From the NCBI GenBank assembly GCA_009103225.1, contig RHPI01001737.1, positions 864,091 to 928,090 on the forward strand: a DNA stretch of 64,000 nucleotides, read 5' to 3'. The DNA comes from Chlorokybus atmophyticus (lineage: Eukaryota > Plantae > Mesostigma and Chlorokybus algae). Below are positions 4,056 to 37,327 of the stretch, piece by piece. Below the pieces are notes generated by a model, which was not told where the DNA came from, searched no databases, and saw only the letters and a program-made list of their open reading frames with translations. Numbering within the stretch: the stretch's first letter is position 1; every line of letters starts with the position of its first letter. Position numbers and translations under genes: made by a program.

Positions 4056-4343
4056 ATAATTGCAAATGCGGCATTCTCCTGCAGACATGCCGATATGCGC
4101 CCCCCCCCCCCTGTGTGTGTGTGTGTGNNNNNNNNNNNNNNNNNNNNNNNNNNNNNNNNNNNNNNNNNNNNNNNNNNNNNNNNNNNNNNNNNNNNNNNNN
4201 NNNNNNNNNNNNNNNNNNNNNNNNNNNNNNNNNNNNNNNNNNNNNNNNNNNNNNNNNNNNNNNNNNNNNNNNNNNNNNNNNNNNNNNNNNNNGGGGGGGG
4301 CATTAATCGACTGCAGGAGATAGTGGCACATTCGCAGTCTATT
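4056..4343. repeat. Imperfect ~55-bp inverted repeat around poly-C/(TG)n/N-gap/poly-G (foldback or MITE-like)
   Basis: Left arm AATAATTGCAAATGCGGCATTCTCCTGCAG..GCCCCC versus the reverse complement of the right arm AATAGACTGCGAATGTGCCACTATCTCCTGCAG..GCCCCC. Confidence 0.45.
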
Positions 4344-19761: not shown

Positions 19762-21214
19762 TAACCCTTATCGCCCCAGAGCGCCGCGGACATTGTCGCT
19801 GGACGCGTGTCGGCATTGAGATTTGAGGTTACGCTCGTCGCCAGTTGACACGTCGTGGTCCGTCGTCGTCATCGACAAGCGCCGACGTCGTCGGCAACTA
19901 GCCTCTCAAATTGGCGACCTTAGTTATGAAATGCTTGCCCCACGATAGCTGCTTGGGCCCCCCGACTGACCTAGGTATTACTTAAAGTCTTACGACAGTG
20001 AGTCAGCGCGCGGTCGGATTGGCCTATGTAATAGTCTTGATCAATCTTAATGGTGGTTCTTCCGGGCCGTTGAAGGTGCATGCCCCTTGGTGCATCTGAC
20101 GAATGCTGGCGAAGCCTGCTGTGTATGTAACAGCGAAAGCATTTGCATTTGATTTGCTACGTTATTCATGCGTCCATGACTATACCGTAATATGAAACCT
20201 TACACACTTGCTGCCATACCGTTACCTTACACAAATTGAATTCTATTACACAAGTGTCATACAAATAAGCTGTCATGACATTTTATACATGTCGTCAAGT
20301 TATGACATTCTAATGCTTTACAAGTGAAAGTCATAACATTCATAATACGTGTATATATATCCGCTAGTATATACATCATACATGATGTGTTTTGAATGAT
20401 ATAATTTTATAACTTAAAGAGAGAGCCAGACATTGCTCACAAGTACAATAGAATATATCTCACATAACGCTTCAGGGCATAAAGGTACGTGTAGGCCGCG
20501 GCACAGCAAGCGGCGGCCTCAATGCAGTCTACTGCGAAGGACTACACTTAGTCTAATTTGGCGGGAACAGGGGGGGGAGAGTCGCCAATGGCGACGGACT
20601 GACCCCCTTGGTGCAACTTGGCGAAAGTGACGGCGAAACACGCATTCTTAATGGTGACGCCGGCGCGCAAAAAGGTGACGCAGCGCGCGCGCTCATTAGC
20701 CGTGGCAGCGCGCTCTCCTCGCTGACATGGCAGTGCCACCCTCCAATCCATATCCAGATCCTCCTTGACGATGACATGGCGCAGACGGTCTGGTTCTGCG
20801 GCAGACGTCAACACTTTCTCTCTTGCACCGGCAGCAACTTATCAGTGTAAGCAGTCTTGCAGCGCGGAGGCGAGAGACAGAGACAGTGTCTGTGAGAGCT
20901 GTTTGATTGCAGGCAGGTAAGCTTCCGCCGCAACTGCATGCTTGTGCGCAATAGAGTTATCCTGTGTCCATCCAACTGTCTGTTGGGCCCTATGGTTCGG
21001 GTGGCAGTGCACTTCTTGCTATCCAACAGCGCATGCCTGGTGTCACATGCTTGGTGAAAGTATCGGCCGTGTTACGCTTCCTTAGTTACAGTTGGTTGTG
21101 GGTTGGGCGGCACTTACTGAGTTTACACCATGGCATGTGTCGAGTCAGTCCCTGAAGGTGTTTTTTTCTCTGGTGACTGCAAGCAGGTGTTTGATTTGAG
21201 AGGAAGCAGGCAAC

Positions 21215-21637
21215 ATGGCGGACAACGAGCAGAAGTACAGCTACGACGAGCAGGGCAAGCCCAACGCCGAAGACCCGATGGAGCGCGTGCGTGCTGGCGG
21301 CCACAAGGGAGGTGTCAGGGGCGGCCAGGTCATTCACGAGATGGCTGCCGAGGTAGGTTCTCTGCATGTGCAGGCGTGAATGCTGACTCTGGCTGCCCCT
21401 GGTCATGCGTGAGTGTTCATGTTGTGAGAAGCCGTGTGCATGCATTTGTTATCCTGAGAGTGTGCTGCACATGTCGCGAGTCTACTTGTGCATAAAGTTG
21501 GCTAAATTTGCTTTCTTGCTGTGCAGCAACGTGGTCAGGACCCCGACTCTGTCGGCAAGTATACCTCACATGGCGAAGCAACAACGTACCAGAAGGAAGA
21601 GCAGGACATTGATCCAACGACGGACAAGTCTGAGTAA
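21215..21637 (+). CDS. Small hydrophilin, KGG/Con-10/LEA5-like (82 aa, 2 exons: 21215-21352, 21527-21637)
   Basis: The spliced ORF reads MADNEQKYSYDEQGKPNAEDPMERVRAGGHKGG..HEMAAE^QRGQDPD..DKSE*. It has an in-frame GT-AG intron, and its paralogue at 27545-27911 has the same intron position. Confidence 0.8.
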
Positions 21638-23069
21638 CTCACTTTGTACATACAGCAACCTTGCGCGTAGACATCACCAACTTCAGCGGCTAGTAGTGTG
21701 GCTTTCTCTTTGATGGAGGCTGTTGTAGAGAGGTGCAGCTTGTAGGAGAGTTCGACTTGTACAGCTCTGCGCTCGATATGTCTTGTAGCGCCAGTGAACA
21801 TGTTCCAGCTTGCAGCTTGACAGTGAGTGATGCATGTTGTATAAACTGTTGTCTGTATACATGCATGCAACATGTAGCAAGAAACATTTCTATGCCGAAT
21901 GTGTACACATGTACAGTCAATTTTGCGCCCAGGTCAAGTGACCTGTGCAATAAATGCATCCTCCTAGTTGGTATCCATCTTGATAACATGCATTTGGACA
22001 TGTAATGAAAGGGAAAAACATTTGCATCAATTAACACGTTAGTGTGATATTATGTATGTGAAAGTATGGTGGGTATAGTGGTGGTATTCGAACCTCAGAG
22101 CAAGCATGTGGCTTAATCTTATTTCACAACGCCCTCTTTCGCTCGTGCGCACATATGTGTGCAAAGATTGAAATGGCAATTCGAGTGTGAAGAAGAAGTT
22201 TGCTAACAGAGAGAGAGAGAAAGAGAGAGAGAGAAAGCTTGGCCAAAGTACCACCACTTCGGCAAGTATACATGTGATTGTAGACACACGAAAATGGTGA
22301 TGAAGTCTATAAACATTGCTGAAACGCTATTACCGCAATGCCAATCCATGCCAATTGGTACTATGGCATTCTGCATTGGCATACAACAATCTTCATGATG
22401 CTGACCACATGGTATGCTTGATTGTTGGATATGTAAAATCAGGTAGTTAATAGTGTGAACAAATTCATACCGTGTGTTGTTGGAGTGCATGGTGCGCGAA
22501 TACATGTAATTTGAAGTGCAAATTCATCAGGTGATGTTGCATGTGCATCTACAGATTTTAGTATCGAGCATCACATTGTAATAATCTCGATACTATGTTG
22601 ACTCATATGCACTGCTCGTAAATTTGCAACATCTAATTTTTAAAATTTGCATTATTCAACTTTACTTCATGTTAACAACAATCAGCACTTGAGCATCCAC
22701 ATCGTGATACAATGTATAACTTGTTAAACAATGCAATGTGTTTATAACATGACGATTGTTTTGTTACCGACTTCAAGGCGAGCTGCGCAAGCAAAGCGTA
22801 TATGTTGCAACAAACTCGTTATGTACCTTTTATAGTAAAACATAAACATATCATCAAATACAAGAGTACTCTTGTGTGTTGCACATCTTGAAGCGTTTGC
22901 CTATGTTGCAACGCAGACTCTTTCTGCATTCATTAACCTGCAAAATGGGCTTCCGGGAGCGGTTTACATGTACATGGCAAGGGGATACATGTGCGTTCTT
23001 CCGTGACGGCGTCATCGCGTCACGAGTGGTCAACACCGTGACCCACAATCCATAACGGGCGGCAGCACT

Positions 23070-23106
23070 CACGTGACACAAATCGCGCACGTGGCGGCAT
23101 GACGTC
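23070..23106. promoter_or_regulatory. G-box/ABRE-like cluster upstream of the PsaD-like gene
   Basis: CACGTG at 23070, CACGTGGC at 23088 and TGACGTC at 23100, about 250 bp before the ATG at 23349. Confidence 0.5.
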
Positions 23107-23348
23107 GCGTCCTATTTCGCAGGCGCGGCTAATTCAAGTCAAACCTCCCATTTTACTGGGGAATGACCACTTCTTCGGGAGTGTCTTGCACACTATATAT
23201 CCACATCGGTTGCCCCGCTTGTGTATATTGTGTTTTCTGCTGTGTGTTGTAGAGCAGACAAGAGCGGGGAGAGAGAAACTTGCTCTACACAGCACTCCGC
23301 TAACAGCAGCAGTAGCAGGAGCAAGCAGGCTTTCTGTTTCTAAGCAAC

Positions 23349-24245
23349 ATGGCTGGCACTGGTGCTTCCTCCTTCTGCGGCCAGGCTCTGGTGCTGCCAC
23401 GCGCTACCAGCACTCCCCGCTCAGTCCACGACCTCACGGTGAGTGATATTGATCGACTGCTCGACGTGTTCTGGTTCTGGATCTTGTGCTCTTGCTGTTG
23501 TTGTTGCGGTCAGAGCAGTAGGTCATAGCAGTGACTGGTGTCCTTCTGCAACCAACAAGCCAACTGTTGCAGGTTCGGGCAGCTGCCACGGCCCCCTCTT
23601 CATCCACTGGCCCTGTGGAGCACCTGGAACACCTGCCAAAGGTAGTTGTGTGTTCGTATGCGTGTGCGCGTGCGTATACATGTTGGGAAACAGATGCTCC
23701 CTTGGATCTGCTGTGCACTGACCTACCTTGCTTCTGTTTGATTCAGGCCACAAGACCAGGCGGCAAGGGGTTCATCGCACGGTCGCGCCTCAACAACAAG
23801 AACGCCAAGCGCAACGAGACTGCCACCCAGTACTTCTTCGCCTGGACCAGCCAGGAAGAGAAGGTGCATCACAGCCCTTATGTGTGCCTGCCTATACAGT
23901 TGTGTACTGGAGTGCGTATGTACACGCTGCACATGTGCGCACGCCTTTCAAGTATTAACTCCTCATTTGCACAGGTGTTCACGATGCCTTCGGGTCGGGC
24001 AGCGATGATGAGCCGCGGGATGAACATGCTGCGCGTGAGCGGGGGCCGCAGCGCCGCCTCTCTCGAGAAGAACCTGCGCGCAAAGGGCACCAGCGACATC
24101 GCACGCTACCACATCAACGACGAGTGAGTGTTCATTGACCCTATTGCTGAGCACTCATCACATGCCAACTGTGCACAGATTGATTGATGTCAATCCTGTG
24201 TTGCTGCTCAGGGGTGTTGCCAAGCTGGACCGCACCTCTCTTTGA
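23349..24245 (+). CDS. Divergent PsaD-like plastid-targeted protein (152 aa; exons 23349-23438, 23573-23641, 23747-23863, 23975-24123, 24212-24245)
   Basis: Four canonical introns join in frame. The N-terminus is Ser/Ala/Arg-rich with a VRA cleavage-like motif. The core YFFAWTSQEEKVFTMPSGRAAMMSRGMNMLR matches PsaD YVITWxxxKEQIFEMPTGGAAIMRxGxNLLK. Confidence 0.8.
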
Positions 24246-25410
24246 TGCTCGCAAAGCTGAAGACTACTACAGTACTTCATTACTATACGAGAAGTGTTGA
24301 TTCTTGCAAGCGGTTGCTTGCGTCATATGGTTGCTAGAGCTGTACTTGTAGGTTTATTCATTCATCAAAGTTGACAGTTGGCTTGAGTTAGACTCTGCTA
24401 GATGTGTGTACCATTGACGAGCTGTAGGTTCTAATAATAAGCAACAAGTTGCATACACGATTGATGATTTACGTGTCTTTGCCACTCTGCTCTGGCAAAT
24501 TCATGCTTCTCTAGTCGGTTCATGGATAATTGATTCTCTAACTGGGCGACCATGGTTTGCAAAACATTCAAGAAGAGCTAGTGTAGTTGAAAATATTGAA
24601 CGATATGCAATGGCATGCCACCACTGTACATCACATTGTGTTGGTTGAGCAGCAGCAAAGCAGCGTATATTTCTGAGTATATGACAATTTGTGACTTTTG
24701 ACGATGATGTGAGTGTCATCAATGTGACAGGGTATGGCAGCCACATGTTTGTACAACCAAAACGGCAGGTTGCTTTCTTTCTTTCTGAGTGGTATAAGCG
24801 AACCTGCAATGACGTGGTAACATTGATTGATTGATGACAAACGATACACTACTACTCTGTCTATTGAGTTGCACGACAGGCTTTGCAGGTGGAAGCTACA
24901 ACAGTGTTGAAACGCCACACACGTACGAAGGTATATCGTTCTGGGTGGCACTGGTGCATGTCCCCTGAAAGTGTTGTGTCGGACTGTTCTGACTCAGCTG
25001 TGCAGGAAGCCGACAAAGTAGTGAATGCGGTCAGTTTGGACAATGTGGACATGTTGTCGTAGGTGAAGTCGGTGTCGAGTGGTCGCACGCGCGTGTTGAG
25101 ACCCCGCTGTCATGGAGTCCACATCAGTGTCGGGGATGACGTGTGCATCGTCTCTGTGAGTAGATGTTGGGGTGGAGGCTTGATAGTGGTCGCTTGTTGT
25201 GTTGTCGTGTTGGTGTGGTCACACACGCTGGCCAAAGATGATGCTGGTCTGAGGACGCACCGGAGCAACAACTATCAAAGCCTCCTCCTTTTGCTGTTGA
25301 GATGTCTTTTGAGGTGGCCTTTGTGGTCCCAAGCACCTGGCAACGGCATGACCAAGCTGTGGTGTCAAGCAACATGCGCATCATACCACGCTAACAAGTG
25401 TTGACCATAA

Positions 25411-25444: not shown

Positions 25445-27544
25445 CAGCTTAGTAGATGCGCACGGCTGCTTGGTGGCATCCCTTACCTGAGCGTACAGCA
25501 CCAGATCTTCAATTGCGCTGCTCTCAAGCTTCATCACGCTCCCTTCCACCACTTCTCCTCCTTCAACTCCCCCTCACCTCACCTTCTGCACACACCACGC
25601 TCCTCACACCCTCTCCACCCCCCCATATCCTCCATCACACAACAACCCAAACTCCTGTCTTGCGGCCGAGGGCGGATGCGGATGCGGCAGTGATAGCGTC
25701 ACCGGTCTAGCCGGAGAGGTAAGGCTAGGATGTGGCTGGAGAGGGTGTTAGCAGTGGTGCTGGCAGTGGTTGTGGTGGTGGCATCAGCAATGGTCATGGT
25801 GGCGATACTTGCACTGGTTCTGCATTGGTGTTAGTGCTGATGCTGGCACTGGTGCTGGTATAATATTAAGTCCCGGTATGAGAAGGAGCACAACTGGCAG
25901 TACTGGCACTGTGTAGCACCAGCACCAAGCAAGCACCACCAGAGTGCTGCTGCCACATTTGCTAATGCTGTTAGTGATTACTACTACCACAGGTAGCAGC
26001 TTCAGCACCAGCACTATCGGGCATGAAACACCGCTGCTACTGGTGCTGGCCGTGGTGGTGTTGATTATTACTACCAACCTGCAACTAGACCAATATGACC
26101 GCTGCTGCTGCCAGAGTAAGTACCACCATGACACTACCACCAGCAACAGTGGTTCCAGGATCAGTAGACACAGCAGATGTACACTGCCACCGTGTAAACA
26201 CAACAAGACCAACATCCCAGCGCAGCGATCACGGCGTCGAGCTCGGAACGGTAGGACTGCATCTGACGAGAGGAGGAGAGGTGGGATTGGTGGGTGGGTG
26301 TGGGGGGGGGGGGGNNNNNNNNNNNNNNNNNNNNNNNNNNNNNNNNNNNNNNNNNNNNNNNNNNNNNNNNGGGGGGGGGGGGGGGGGGGGGGGGGGGGTC
26401 TCCTGTTGGTGTGATGTGTTGGGGTGGATGTGTCTAGTACCTGATGTTTGAAGTGCTTGGCTGCGTGGACGAACTCGCGTGTGGATGGGAGCTTCTGACC
26501 CCCGCCTGCAGACGTGGCATAGGCTGAGTGTCACATGCCTGACATATTGGGCGGTAACATAGGGGTGAGCATGCACAAGCACATGCATGCTCGCGAGCAG
26601 ACAAGGCTGAGTATGCACGTAAGTCTCTTTTGAACTAGTACAGCAACATTCATCAGACATTGTAAGTGTGCATGTGACACACACGCACGCGCTCGCCAAC
26701 ATCCGTGTGCAAAATTGTGCACACACAACCAGACGCGCGCACACGCTCACGCTCGCATAGTGTCACATGTATACGCCCATCCAAACACATGCGCACGGCA
26801 TTTCCAGGCTCGACAACGGTACGGGTGGACTGGATAATGGCGTGCGCAAGCTGGAAATTAGCGGCGCAGGTTTGCCGGTAGTGTGGTACTGATGTTGCCA
26901 GTCAGTATGCTGGCTGATCGTTCAGTATTATATATCTGTGCAAATGCCCATGCCCGAGTTTACAAAATCTGATGACAATCTCGTGTATATGTACATTTGT
27001 GTACACATGCACACAAGCATACACATTTGTGCACACACATTCACATACAAACGCGAGCATATGCACGCGCATACTTCTTAAGATTCAGACATCAAACAAA
27101 ACATGCAGAAGGTTGGAGTCGCGTACAAAGGTTTGCGCAGGGTGTTAGCAGTATCATCCATCTTTAGAATTACTTTCTCCAACTGAGCAAGCTCGTTTGC
27201 AATGGGTACAGGCTTGTTTTGGATTCGCTGAACTTTGGTAGTCTGGTCAAGTACATGGAGTGCAGTGATTCATGAATGTTGCAATTGCCCACATGCCTGG
27301 CAGTTATTTGGCATTTAGCAACTTTCAAATGTAATATTCGCGGTTTTCCAGTACGAGTTGATTGGCATGCGACAGACAAGCGCAATGCAAGCAGGAAGCA
27401 GCCAACCATACCACACTCACACGCGAGTCATGCACTCAGATTTGCGATATTCTATTCCAACAGTTGCAATGTACAAGATTTACAGCGGGTGAGGCTACCG
27501 CACACCAAATCTACGCCTGCCAGCACAGTTTCAAGGGAGCTACT

Positions 27545-27911
27545 TCACTCCTCCTCCTCCTCCTCCTTGTCGTCCTCCTTGTCCTGCTTGCCCTCGTGCT
27601 TGCTGGGCTTCGTGTTCTCGTGAGACGCCTGGTAGGAGGTCGGCCTCCCACCCTGGGTGTACATGCCAGCCTTCTCAGGGTCCTCACCCCTCCTCTGTAC
27701 ACAGACAGGCAAGCAAGTGTGAGCTACAGTGTTGGTTTACGGTTGTCCAGAACACATATGGTGGTAAAGCTTGAACTTTGGTCACCTGTGCGGCCATCTC
27801 GTGGATGCGGTGGCCGCCCTTGGCGCCTCCGGCGCGGATGCGTTCCATGGGGTCGGCGGCGCTGGGCCTGTCGTTCTCGTCGTACTCGTGCTTCAGGTCA
27901 GACTCCGACAT
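27545..27911 (-). CDS. Small hydrophilin paralogue, KGG-like (91 aa; exons 27911-27786, 27694-27545)
   Basis: Reads MSESDLKHEYDENDRPSAADPMERIRAGGAKGGHRIHEMAAQ^RRGEDPE..DKEEEEE*. A likely 5'UTR intron has its GTAAGC donor at ~28167, and TATATAAA lies on the minus strand at ~28220. Confidence 0.8.
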
Positions 27912-28440
27912 GGTTGGTTGGCTTTATCGACTAGTCTTGGCGCTACAGAATCACTGCGAAGGCAAGGTAAACACAGGTGAAGTACTAGTAACTCGTGCCC
28001 GTGTCGAATGATAGCAAGCACGCTGGTACCATGCATTGGCCGCATGCTGTTGCACAACAGTGTAGAGAGCAATTGAAGAGGGAGGGGGCCCGTGCATGCG
28101 TATAAAACCGAATGCCTTTACCATGTGCCTCAACCAAACACCCACACATGCATAGCACTATGGCTTACCTTGCGGGGCGACGCTCAAACTTGCACTGGCA
28201 AGGGTGTGGGAGGCAGCTGTTTATATATCAGCTACCCGCTACCCTGCGTGGCTGCAAGCCATGGGTGAGCCCAACGTGTATGGGCACGGGGCCTAGGCAT
28301 GGGGCACGGCTCCCGGGTCCAACGGGCCTGCCATTGGGATCCGATCCATCCATGCCATGGTGGCCCAACCCATGGTGCGCGCCGCCTCGTCAACATCAGC
28401 ATTGTTCTTGGCGGTAACGGCCAAGACCCCTGAGCAGCGA

Positions 28441-36620: not shown

Positions 36621-37327
36621 AAAAGGTTTATGAAGCGGACCATCATGCCTTTGGCCACTGCTGCTGAGTGCGTCTAATGCGTGAACCTAGTAGGTTGTAC
36701 TTTCTTGTTATAGTTTTGTAATCATCGAAGAGAGGGTGATGGGTCCTAGAATAAGCAAAGTTAGTTGCTAAAAATGTCAAGTAACTTTGCAGCTATTAGA
36801 GCATTGTATTTGGTGTTATTATTATTTAGGTTTGTGCAGCCCGTCCCAACATACGCATTAAATGAGGAAGCTTGCAAAACATGTGCAGCTTCGAAGACAA
36901 TGCAAGTAAGGCATGAAGTTGATGCAATGAGCGTGAGGACATTGGGCATTGTTTGCAGTTCAAGGGTTATGCATTGCAAACATTAACAACACGCGACGAC
37001 ACATAGTGAGCAGACTTGGTCAGTATGCCAAACGGTGATGGTGAATGACGAAACCATAATCTTCTTGCAGGTGTCGAATGCGTGTCAAGGGATTGAGAAC
37101 ACAGAAGGAGGACCATCAACTGTTGAATGTGCTCTGCTTGAGAGACACCTTGCGAAATTGTGCCCCCCCCCCTAAGGCAAAACCANNNNNNNNNNNNNNN
37201 NNNNNNNNNNNNNNNNNNNNNNNNNNNNNNNNNCACCACCACCACCGCCCCCCCCGGCGGGCGCGCGCGCGCGCGCACTGTACTTGTGTGGGCAATGCCA
37301 ATATACAGCGTGCGACCCTCTACACTG

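Follow-up and report, generated by a model that had tools for sequence, protein, structure and literature searches.

A five-exon PsaD-like gene and its transcript

The window, by which we mean the whole analyzed stretch of 64,000 nt, is about 50% GC and has short GT..AG introns. At 23349-24245 on the forward strand, which carries all the gene features given below, there is a PsaD-like gene with five exons that together comprise 459 nt, that is, 152 codons plus TGA. Exon 1 (23349-23438, 30 codons, MAGTGASSFCGQALVLPRATSTPRSVHDLT) encodes a putative chloroplast transit peptide and is followed by intron 1 (23439-23572, 134 nt, GTGAGT..TTGCAG, 50% GC). Exon 2 (23573-23641, 23 codons, VRAAATAPSSSTGPVEHLEHLPK) carries the likely stromal processing motif together with an N-terminal extension or linker. 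Exon 3 (23747-23863, 39 codons) encodes PGGKGFI, then a basic insertion of 10 residues, and finally YFFAWTSQEEK, which is the first strand of PsaD. Exon 4 (23975-24123, 49 codons plus 2 nt) encodes the PsaD hairpin VFTMPSGRAAMMSRGMNML, the equivalent of the PsaD helix, GRSAASLEKNLRAKG, and the strand ARYHIND. Intron 4 (24124-24211, 88 nt, GTGAGT..GCTCAG) would, if retained, bring in an immediate TGA at 24125-24127. Exon 5 (24212-24245) completes a GAG codon (E) and continues with GVAKLDRTSL to the TGA at 24243-24245. The exons have a GC content of 59 to 67% and a GC3 of 77%, versus 47 to 50% GC in the introns.

The two middle introns, intron 2 (23642-23746, 105 nt) and intron 3 (23864-23974, 111 nt), both GT..AG, have lengths that are multiples of three and are stop-free in the exon frame, for which the joint chance is about 0.009. 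As a consequence, 23522-24124 is a single open frame. The pattern may point to translatable isoforms that keep these introns, or to exon borders that move.

Transcript evidence came from three small public runs of one 2021 study, here X1, X2, and X3, which are the sole public runs containing the stretch; the runs are coded, and the assignment of X1 to X3 to particular isolates is our inference. Irisarri et al. (2021) distinguished five cryptic species of Chlorokybus, a streptophyte green alga, with transcriptome sequencing (RNA-seq) of new isolates, and the genome assembly has been assigned to C. melkonianii (PMC8611356). X1, from a sister Chlorokybus isolate, yielded one spliced RNA contig of 613 nt, 95 to 99% alike, which aligns in five pieces (23269-23437, 23572-23639, 23745-23861, 23973-24123, and 24212-24313). 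It skips all four introns at GT..AG borders and passes the stop codon into 68 nt of 3' untranslated region (UTR) collinear with the genome. Its ends give the minimum extents of the 5' UTR (23269-23348) and of the 3' UTR (24246-24313). No ATG is present from 23269 up to the start codon, which has the context caacaATGG. The contig therefore confirms the gene model, its expression, and the stop position in the sister isolate, and the exon 1/exon 2 junction (23438/23573) is present in both X1 and X2. A previous reading of the DNA, made from the letters alone (the sequence-only reading), had proposed an intact five-exon gene, and this is borne out by the open frame and by a single transcript that carries all four of the predicted junctions together with the stop. 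The locus is thus a real, spliced, and transcribed nuclear gene, and very probably a real protein-coding gene derived from psaD.

The X2 contig over the core is of a different kind. It is the sole X2 contig there (contig 3, 477 nt, 23565-24075), and its joints are noncanonical. The first, from 23634 to 23733 with 7 extra letters, adds 14 nt and breaks the frame relative to exons 1 and 2. The second (23842 to 23962, 2 extra letters) takes out 6 nt and leaves the frame intact; it would read ...FFA-NSFAQ-VFTMPSG, with WTSQEEK lost and the last ~15 nt of intron 3 appearing as exon (NSFAQ). Two of the joints share the microhomology ACCT. The contig opens with 127 nt that do not resemble exon 1, perhaps intron 1 retained in a diverged form; after 24075, the contig jumps to sequence matching the stop codon and 3' UTR, with about 161 nt missing at the 3' end. 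It may represent an aberrant or alternative transcript, a template-switch artifact, or a truly different gene structure. The frame break and the lost pieces suggest that the gene may be unstable or differently built in this more distant Chlorokybus species.

The N terminus of the product is rich in Ala, Ser, Thr, and Arg, has no acidic residue before position 28, and contains a VRAAA motif. The transit peptide is proposed from this composition and motif, and the product is probably a small, chloroplast-bound protein.

Relationship to PsaD

Searches were run exon by exon or with exons 3 and 4 read through intron 3 in frame (the read-through). Against the Pfam PsaD profile (PF02531; curated cutoff, 22.4 bits), exon 4 alone scored 25.3 bits and the read-through scored 35.0 bits, and PsaD was the sole family returned by the scan. 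When all PDB sequences were searched with phmmer, 69 of the 69 matches were PsaD chains, in which IFEMPTGGAAIM...FYRV aligned with VFTMPSG...ARYHI of the product; the identity to a green algal PsaD (6igz_D) was about 35%. Exon 3 alone gave no phmmer match among the PDB sequences, and its assignment to PsaD is made on the basis of the profile alignment described next and of its collinearity with exon 4.

For that alignment, cyanobacterial psaD loci were fetched with a degenerate FEMPTGGAAIM pattern, their open reading frames (ORFs) were extracted, and a profile of 142 positions was built from 110 cyanobacterial PsaD sequences and searched against the stop-free segments in all six frames of the window. 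The sole match was 23522-24124 (31.8 bits; E value, 1.5e-8), the next best segment having an E value of 2.2. The end of exon 3, NETATQYFFAWTSQEE, corresponds to profile positions 23 to 38, and exon 4 corresponds to positions 40 to 86, which places them side by side and collinearly in the profile, exactly as they are joined in the mRNA.

In a MAFFT alignment with 16 diverse cyanobacterial PsaD proteins, the product is 33 to 40% identical to them, whereas algal and cyanobacterial PsaD proteins share about 70% over the same stretch. The invariant PsaD residues P, GG, G, Y, W, F, MP, G, AA, M, G, N, and I are kept. The PsaD core motif that had been claimed for the locus is present: exon 3 ends with YFFAWTSQEEK and exon 4 begins with VFTMPSGRAAMMSRGMNMLRV, and of the conserved hairpin FEMPTGGAAIMxxGxNLL, the product retains F, MP, G, AA, M, G, N, and L. 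The claimed replacement of two other conserved segments was confirmed as well. In place of FGGSTGGLL, the product has PGGKGFI, in which only P, GG, and G are kept, followed by the basic insertion ARSRLNNKNA; in place of RKEQCLAL, it has GGRSAASL. Over the whole helix RKEQCLALGxQLRxKF, for which the product has GGRSAASLEKNLRAKG, only L..LR.K remains. The exons after exon 1 encode 20 Lys plus Arg versus 10 Asp plus Glu, the junction codon counted, an excess that makes the product basic like PsaD. Judged by these comparisons, the product is homologous to PsaD and far more diverged than any authentic PsaD.

Structure predictions had low confidence. AlphaFold2 with a PsaD alignment gave a pLDDT of 47 for the read-through, a model spoiled by its 37 intron-coded residues, and a pLDDT of 56 for exon 4 alone, which was predicted as strand-strand-helix-strand in the order found in PsaD, the helix having a pLDDT of about 60. 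A Foldseek search of the PDB with the exon 4 model found no match at an E value of ≤0.001, and a feature search of the ESM Atlas with exon 4 returned only unnamed bacterial clusters, with a best score of 0.84, and was uninformative. We give the models no weight in either direction. Low model confidence is unsurprising here, because free PsaD is largely disordered off photosystem I (PSI), as seen by nuclear magnetic resonance.

In gene architecture, the Chlorokybus gene differs from the psaD genes of Arabidopsis and Chlamydomonas, which are not known to contain introns, in having four introns. The PDB also holds a 698-residue PSI "subunit II" chain (9vfj_D) with three PsaD repeats, resembling a polyprotein, which indicates that the architecture of PsaD genes can vary in some lineages.

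Absence of the C-terminal clamp

In PSI structures, the C-terminal arm of PsaD wraps around PsaC and reaches PsaB and PsaL. The corresponding profile positions, 87 to 142 (from HPxDGVFPEKVN onward), had no match in any frame of the 64-kb window, and the clamp is absent from the X1 transcript, the ORF stopping at 24245. By eye, 11 residues encoded by exon 5 (E-GVAKLDRTSL) could match the PNGExxYL turn and the following strand of PsaD. The sequence-only reading had stated that the protein stops before HPxDGVYPEKVN and the C-terminal arm, and both the transcript and the profile search bear this out: no longer C-terminal exon was found in the window or in the X1 transcript. The truncation is genuine: the gene encodes the globular front portion of PsaD and lacks the clamp.

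The missing segment also bears on the explanation that this is an ordinary psaD gene, with its C-terminal exons located elsewhere and the truncation produced by gene modeling or assembly. Assembly gaps do occur in the window (4128-4292, 19432, 26315-26370, and 37186-37233) and could be taken to favor it. However, the X1 contig runs across the stop into its collinear 3' UTR, the clamp positions are unmatched in all frames of the 64 kb, and the identity of 33 to 40% is far below the roughly 70% typical of algal and cyanobacterial PsaD. We regard an artifact of this kind as very improbable.

The arm had been credited with clamping PsaC and with helping to dock ferredoxin, and its loss affects these two functions differently. 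The PsaC clamp is certainly lost. The ferredoxin part of the claim calls for a qualification, since a 1.97-Å structure of the tight PSI:ferredoxin complex shows no direct contact between PsaD and ferredoxin (PMC9467995); it does not follow that a direct site for ferredoxin has gone.

Relatives and restriction to Chlorokybus

A word-index protein search with the read-through gave 14 candidates, of which none was significant, and no orthologue turned up when 1.84 billion representative proteins were searched exhaustively with HMMER (phmmer). The only three matches with E values of ≤0.001 in the latter search were long repeat proteins that aligned to the intron-derived middle of the query, and they were rejected as spurious. 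In a database of this size, canonical PsaD, at about 20 to 25 bits, cannot reach significance, but an orthologue 40 to 50% identical over the 88 exon-coded residues should do so, and the family therefore appears to be restricted to Chlorokybus within this library. The library lacks the Chlorokybus product itself, which indicates that it covers streptophyte algae poorly and makes the absence of an orthologue soft evidence; this absence also fits a young or decaying duplicate. Literature searches returned no description of a PsaD-like or truncated paralogue and no relevant work on Chlorokybus PSI subunits.

PsaD is required for stable PSI, so we infer that a canonical psaD gene lies elsewhere in the Chlorokybus genome. 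The best reading of the locus is a lineage-restricted, expressed, core-only PsaD paralogue that is not the structural PsaD subunit. Few photosynthetic proteins are as conserved as PsaD, and where it has paralogues, these are as a rule nearly identical and complete. Land plants offer the closest parallel in that their nuclear psaD is duplicated as well, but PsaD1 and PsaD2 are near-identical, full-length, and interchangeable structural subunits, whereas the Chlorokybus copy is truncated and highly diverged. The literature that we could search yielded no report of a natural PsaD copy that is truncated and has evolved fast but still seems to be constrained.

Substitution pattern

Compared with the window, the X1 contig has 5 mismatches and one indel in 169 nt of 5' UTR and exon 1, 2 mismatches in 68 nt of exon 2, 1 in 117 nt of exon 3, 0 in 151 nt of exon 4, and 0 in 102 nt of exon 5 and 3' UTR. 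Changes are thus concentrated in the 5' UTR, presequence, and linker (7 in 237 nt) relative to the PsaD-like exons and 3' UTR (1 in 370 nt; Fisher P = 0.007). In X2, which is more distant (90 to 95% alike), 5 changes were itemized in exons 3 and 4; 4 of them are synonymous (23776, 23995, 24016, and one further) and 1 replaces Leu with Val (24029), a pattern with a binomial P of about 0.02 under neutrality, where 72% nonsynonymous changes are expected. The X2 presequence has one Gln-to-His change and an in-frame 3-nt deletion. All these counts are small, and differences near the ends of contig pieces are not itemized. The gene has no disabling stop or frameshift in the genomic sequence or in X1, and the X2 contig is inconsistent in frame. 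The Chlorokybus species involved diverged 24 to 76 million years ago (PMC8611356). With these small counts, the substitutions lean toward purifying selection on the PsaD-like core, and we consider it likely that the gene is under functional constraint.

Constraint has to be weighed against the explanation that the gene is a transcribed relic, a partial psaD duplicate that lost its 3' part, gained a short new end, and is drifting with a functionless product. Such a history would account for the extreme divergence of a normally very conserved protein, the truncation exactly at a domain boundary, the lack of an orthologue outside Chlorokybus among the 1.84 billion representatives, the aberrant, frame-breaking X2 contig, and the low-confidence structure models. 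It is harder to reconcile with an ORF that is intact over five exons and four canonical introns at a GC3 of 77%, with PsaD-like exons that have changed less than the 5' part in species whose split dates back about 24 million years or more, and with core substitutions biased toward synonymous ones. Deep divergence combined with an open ORF implies long survival, which would be unlikely without selection. We think a relic unlikely. The earlier proposal of a neofunctionalized paralogue holds up in part: the alignments and the X1 and X2 comparisons support a diverged, truncated PsaD homologue whose core leans toward constraint, while overall the proposal is only partly supported.

Upstream sequence and neighboring exons

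Upstream of the gene, ACGT-core elements are clustered at 22995-23110: TGACG repeats, two CACGTG sites (23070 and 23088), ACGTGGC, and TGACGTC, all of them candidate bZIP sites. A spliced X2 contig covers 23068-23161, including the G-box/ACGT cluster, and reaches at least 280 nt upstream of the start codon; in it, 23162-23304 is replaced by 128 unlike letters. Because it lies inside a spliced contig, the ACGT cluster may be 5' UTR in the X2 species, and the leader may be both long and variable around an ACGT-rich island that is conserved. From an upstream ATG at 23099, an overlapping ORF of 115 codons runs in a different frame.

The gene is flanked by a convergent pair of paralogous exons, 21200-21376 on the forward strand and 27687-27923 on the reverse strand, which share DPMERxRAGGxKGG...IHEMAA. 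They had been described as stress hydrophilins. The pair of RAGGxKGG paralogues is indeed there, but these KGG-motif exons matched no Pfam family at an E value of ≤1. As for the idea that G-boxes and neighbors fit a stress role, CACGTG occurs in the window at the chance level (29 found versus 29.8 expected) without enrichment, and a gene neighborhood tells little in a eukaryote. ACGT-core elements and G-boxes serve light-regulated as well as stress-regulated promoters. A link to stress is unsupported, although these observations speak neither for nor against such a role.

Two further observations concern the region downstream. A short X2 contig of greater depth (44) touches 24636-24671 on the reverse strand and probably stems from a neighboring convergent transcript, and the assembly gap at 26315-26370 sits in a Gly/Pro-rich low-complexity stretch.

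Possible role of a core-only PsaD

Compared with PsaD of the PF02531 family, the product shares, in collinear order, a degenerate GG motif, the W-T-S strand, the MPxGxAAxM hairpin, an equivalent of the helix, and the strand after it, as well as the basic charge and a putative eukaryote-type presequence and extension. It differs in covering only about positions 10 to 86 of 142, without the C terminus that contacts PsaC, PsaB, and PsaL, and in its low identity, replaced motifs, and 10-residue insertion. The predicted precursor of 152 residues would begin with a presequence of the chloroplast type, joined by a short linker to a diverged and strongly basic PsaD front part with a degenerate GG motif, a β-sheet carrying the MPxGxAAxM hairpin, a single helix, and one further strand.

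What is kept of the hairpin and the helix suggests that the product is still able to occupy the position of the PsaD core. After import, it could sit on the surface normally bound by that core, namely, PsaC and the stromal face of PsaA/PsaB. With the clamp missing, PsaC would not be locked in place, and only transient binding would be possible. In such a transient role, the product might serve as a placeholder or chaperone while the stromal ridge is assembled or PsaD is exchanged; alternatively, it might modulate PSI by competition. PsaC, PsaD, and PsaE are added after PsaA/PsaB during PSI assembly (PMC11449006). Low identity and the replacement of FGGSTGGLL and RKEQCLAL mean that interfaces may be lost, and it is only tentatively that we place the action of the product at the PsaD site of PSI, a placement made from sequence features. 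The more specific picture, in which a dedicated core-only PsaD reversibly fills the PsaC/PsaA-PsaB docking site, either as a chaperone of assembly or repair or as a decoy that adjusts the amount of PSI with a complete stromal ridge, is speculative, and we would not bet on it. A role at the stromal ridge would possibly be shared with the PSI assembly factors Ycf3, Ycf4, Y3IP1, PYG7/Ycf37, PSA2, PSA3, PPD1, and CEPA1; the product differs from them in having no sequence relationship to any, and the Pfam scan found no homology to these families.

The same signs of constraint (GC3, synonymous bias, and a more slowly evolving core) would also be expected of a protein that functions off PSI, with the small basic PsaD-core fold reused to bind a new partner, such as an acidic protein of the Fe-S or ferredoxin type or a different stromal complex. 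The strong net positive charge would suit such a role, and since the most-changed segments are ones conserved in authentic PsaD, the binding surface may have changed. A precedent for reuse of a PSI stromal-ridge fold is NdhS/CRR31, a subunit of the chloroplast NDH complex with a PsaE-like fold, although the product has no homology to NdhS. None of our results indicates an alternative partner, however; the best-kept residues are those of the PsaD hairpin, whose known context is PSI, and no related family pointing to another complex was found with Pfam, HMMER, or the ESM Atlas. A function away from PSI thus seems rather doubtful to us.

Overall, the best explanation is a constrained core-only PsaD paralogue, for which transient or competitive binding at the PsaD site is our suggestion; we give this reading a probability of about 0.5. 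The gene is known so far from one small, little-studied algal genus, and its present value is that of a well-founded lead with a proposed function. Binding to PSI or PsaC would allow what the PsaD core does to be told apart from what the clamp does, and it might bring to light a step in the assembly of the stromal ridge, in subunit exchange, or in regulation. Binding to another partner would make the product a case of PSI fold reuse. Should the dedicated core-only role at the docking site prove true, a naturally truncated mimic of a PSI stromal subunit would have been found for the first time, and it could be used to study the PsaD core without its clamp.
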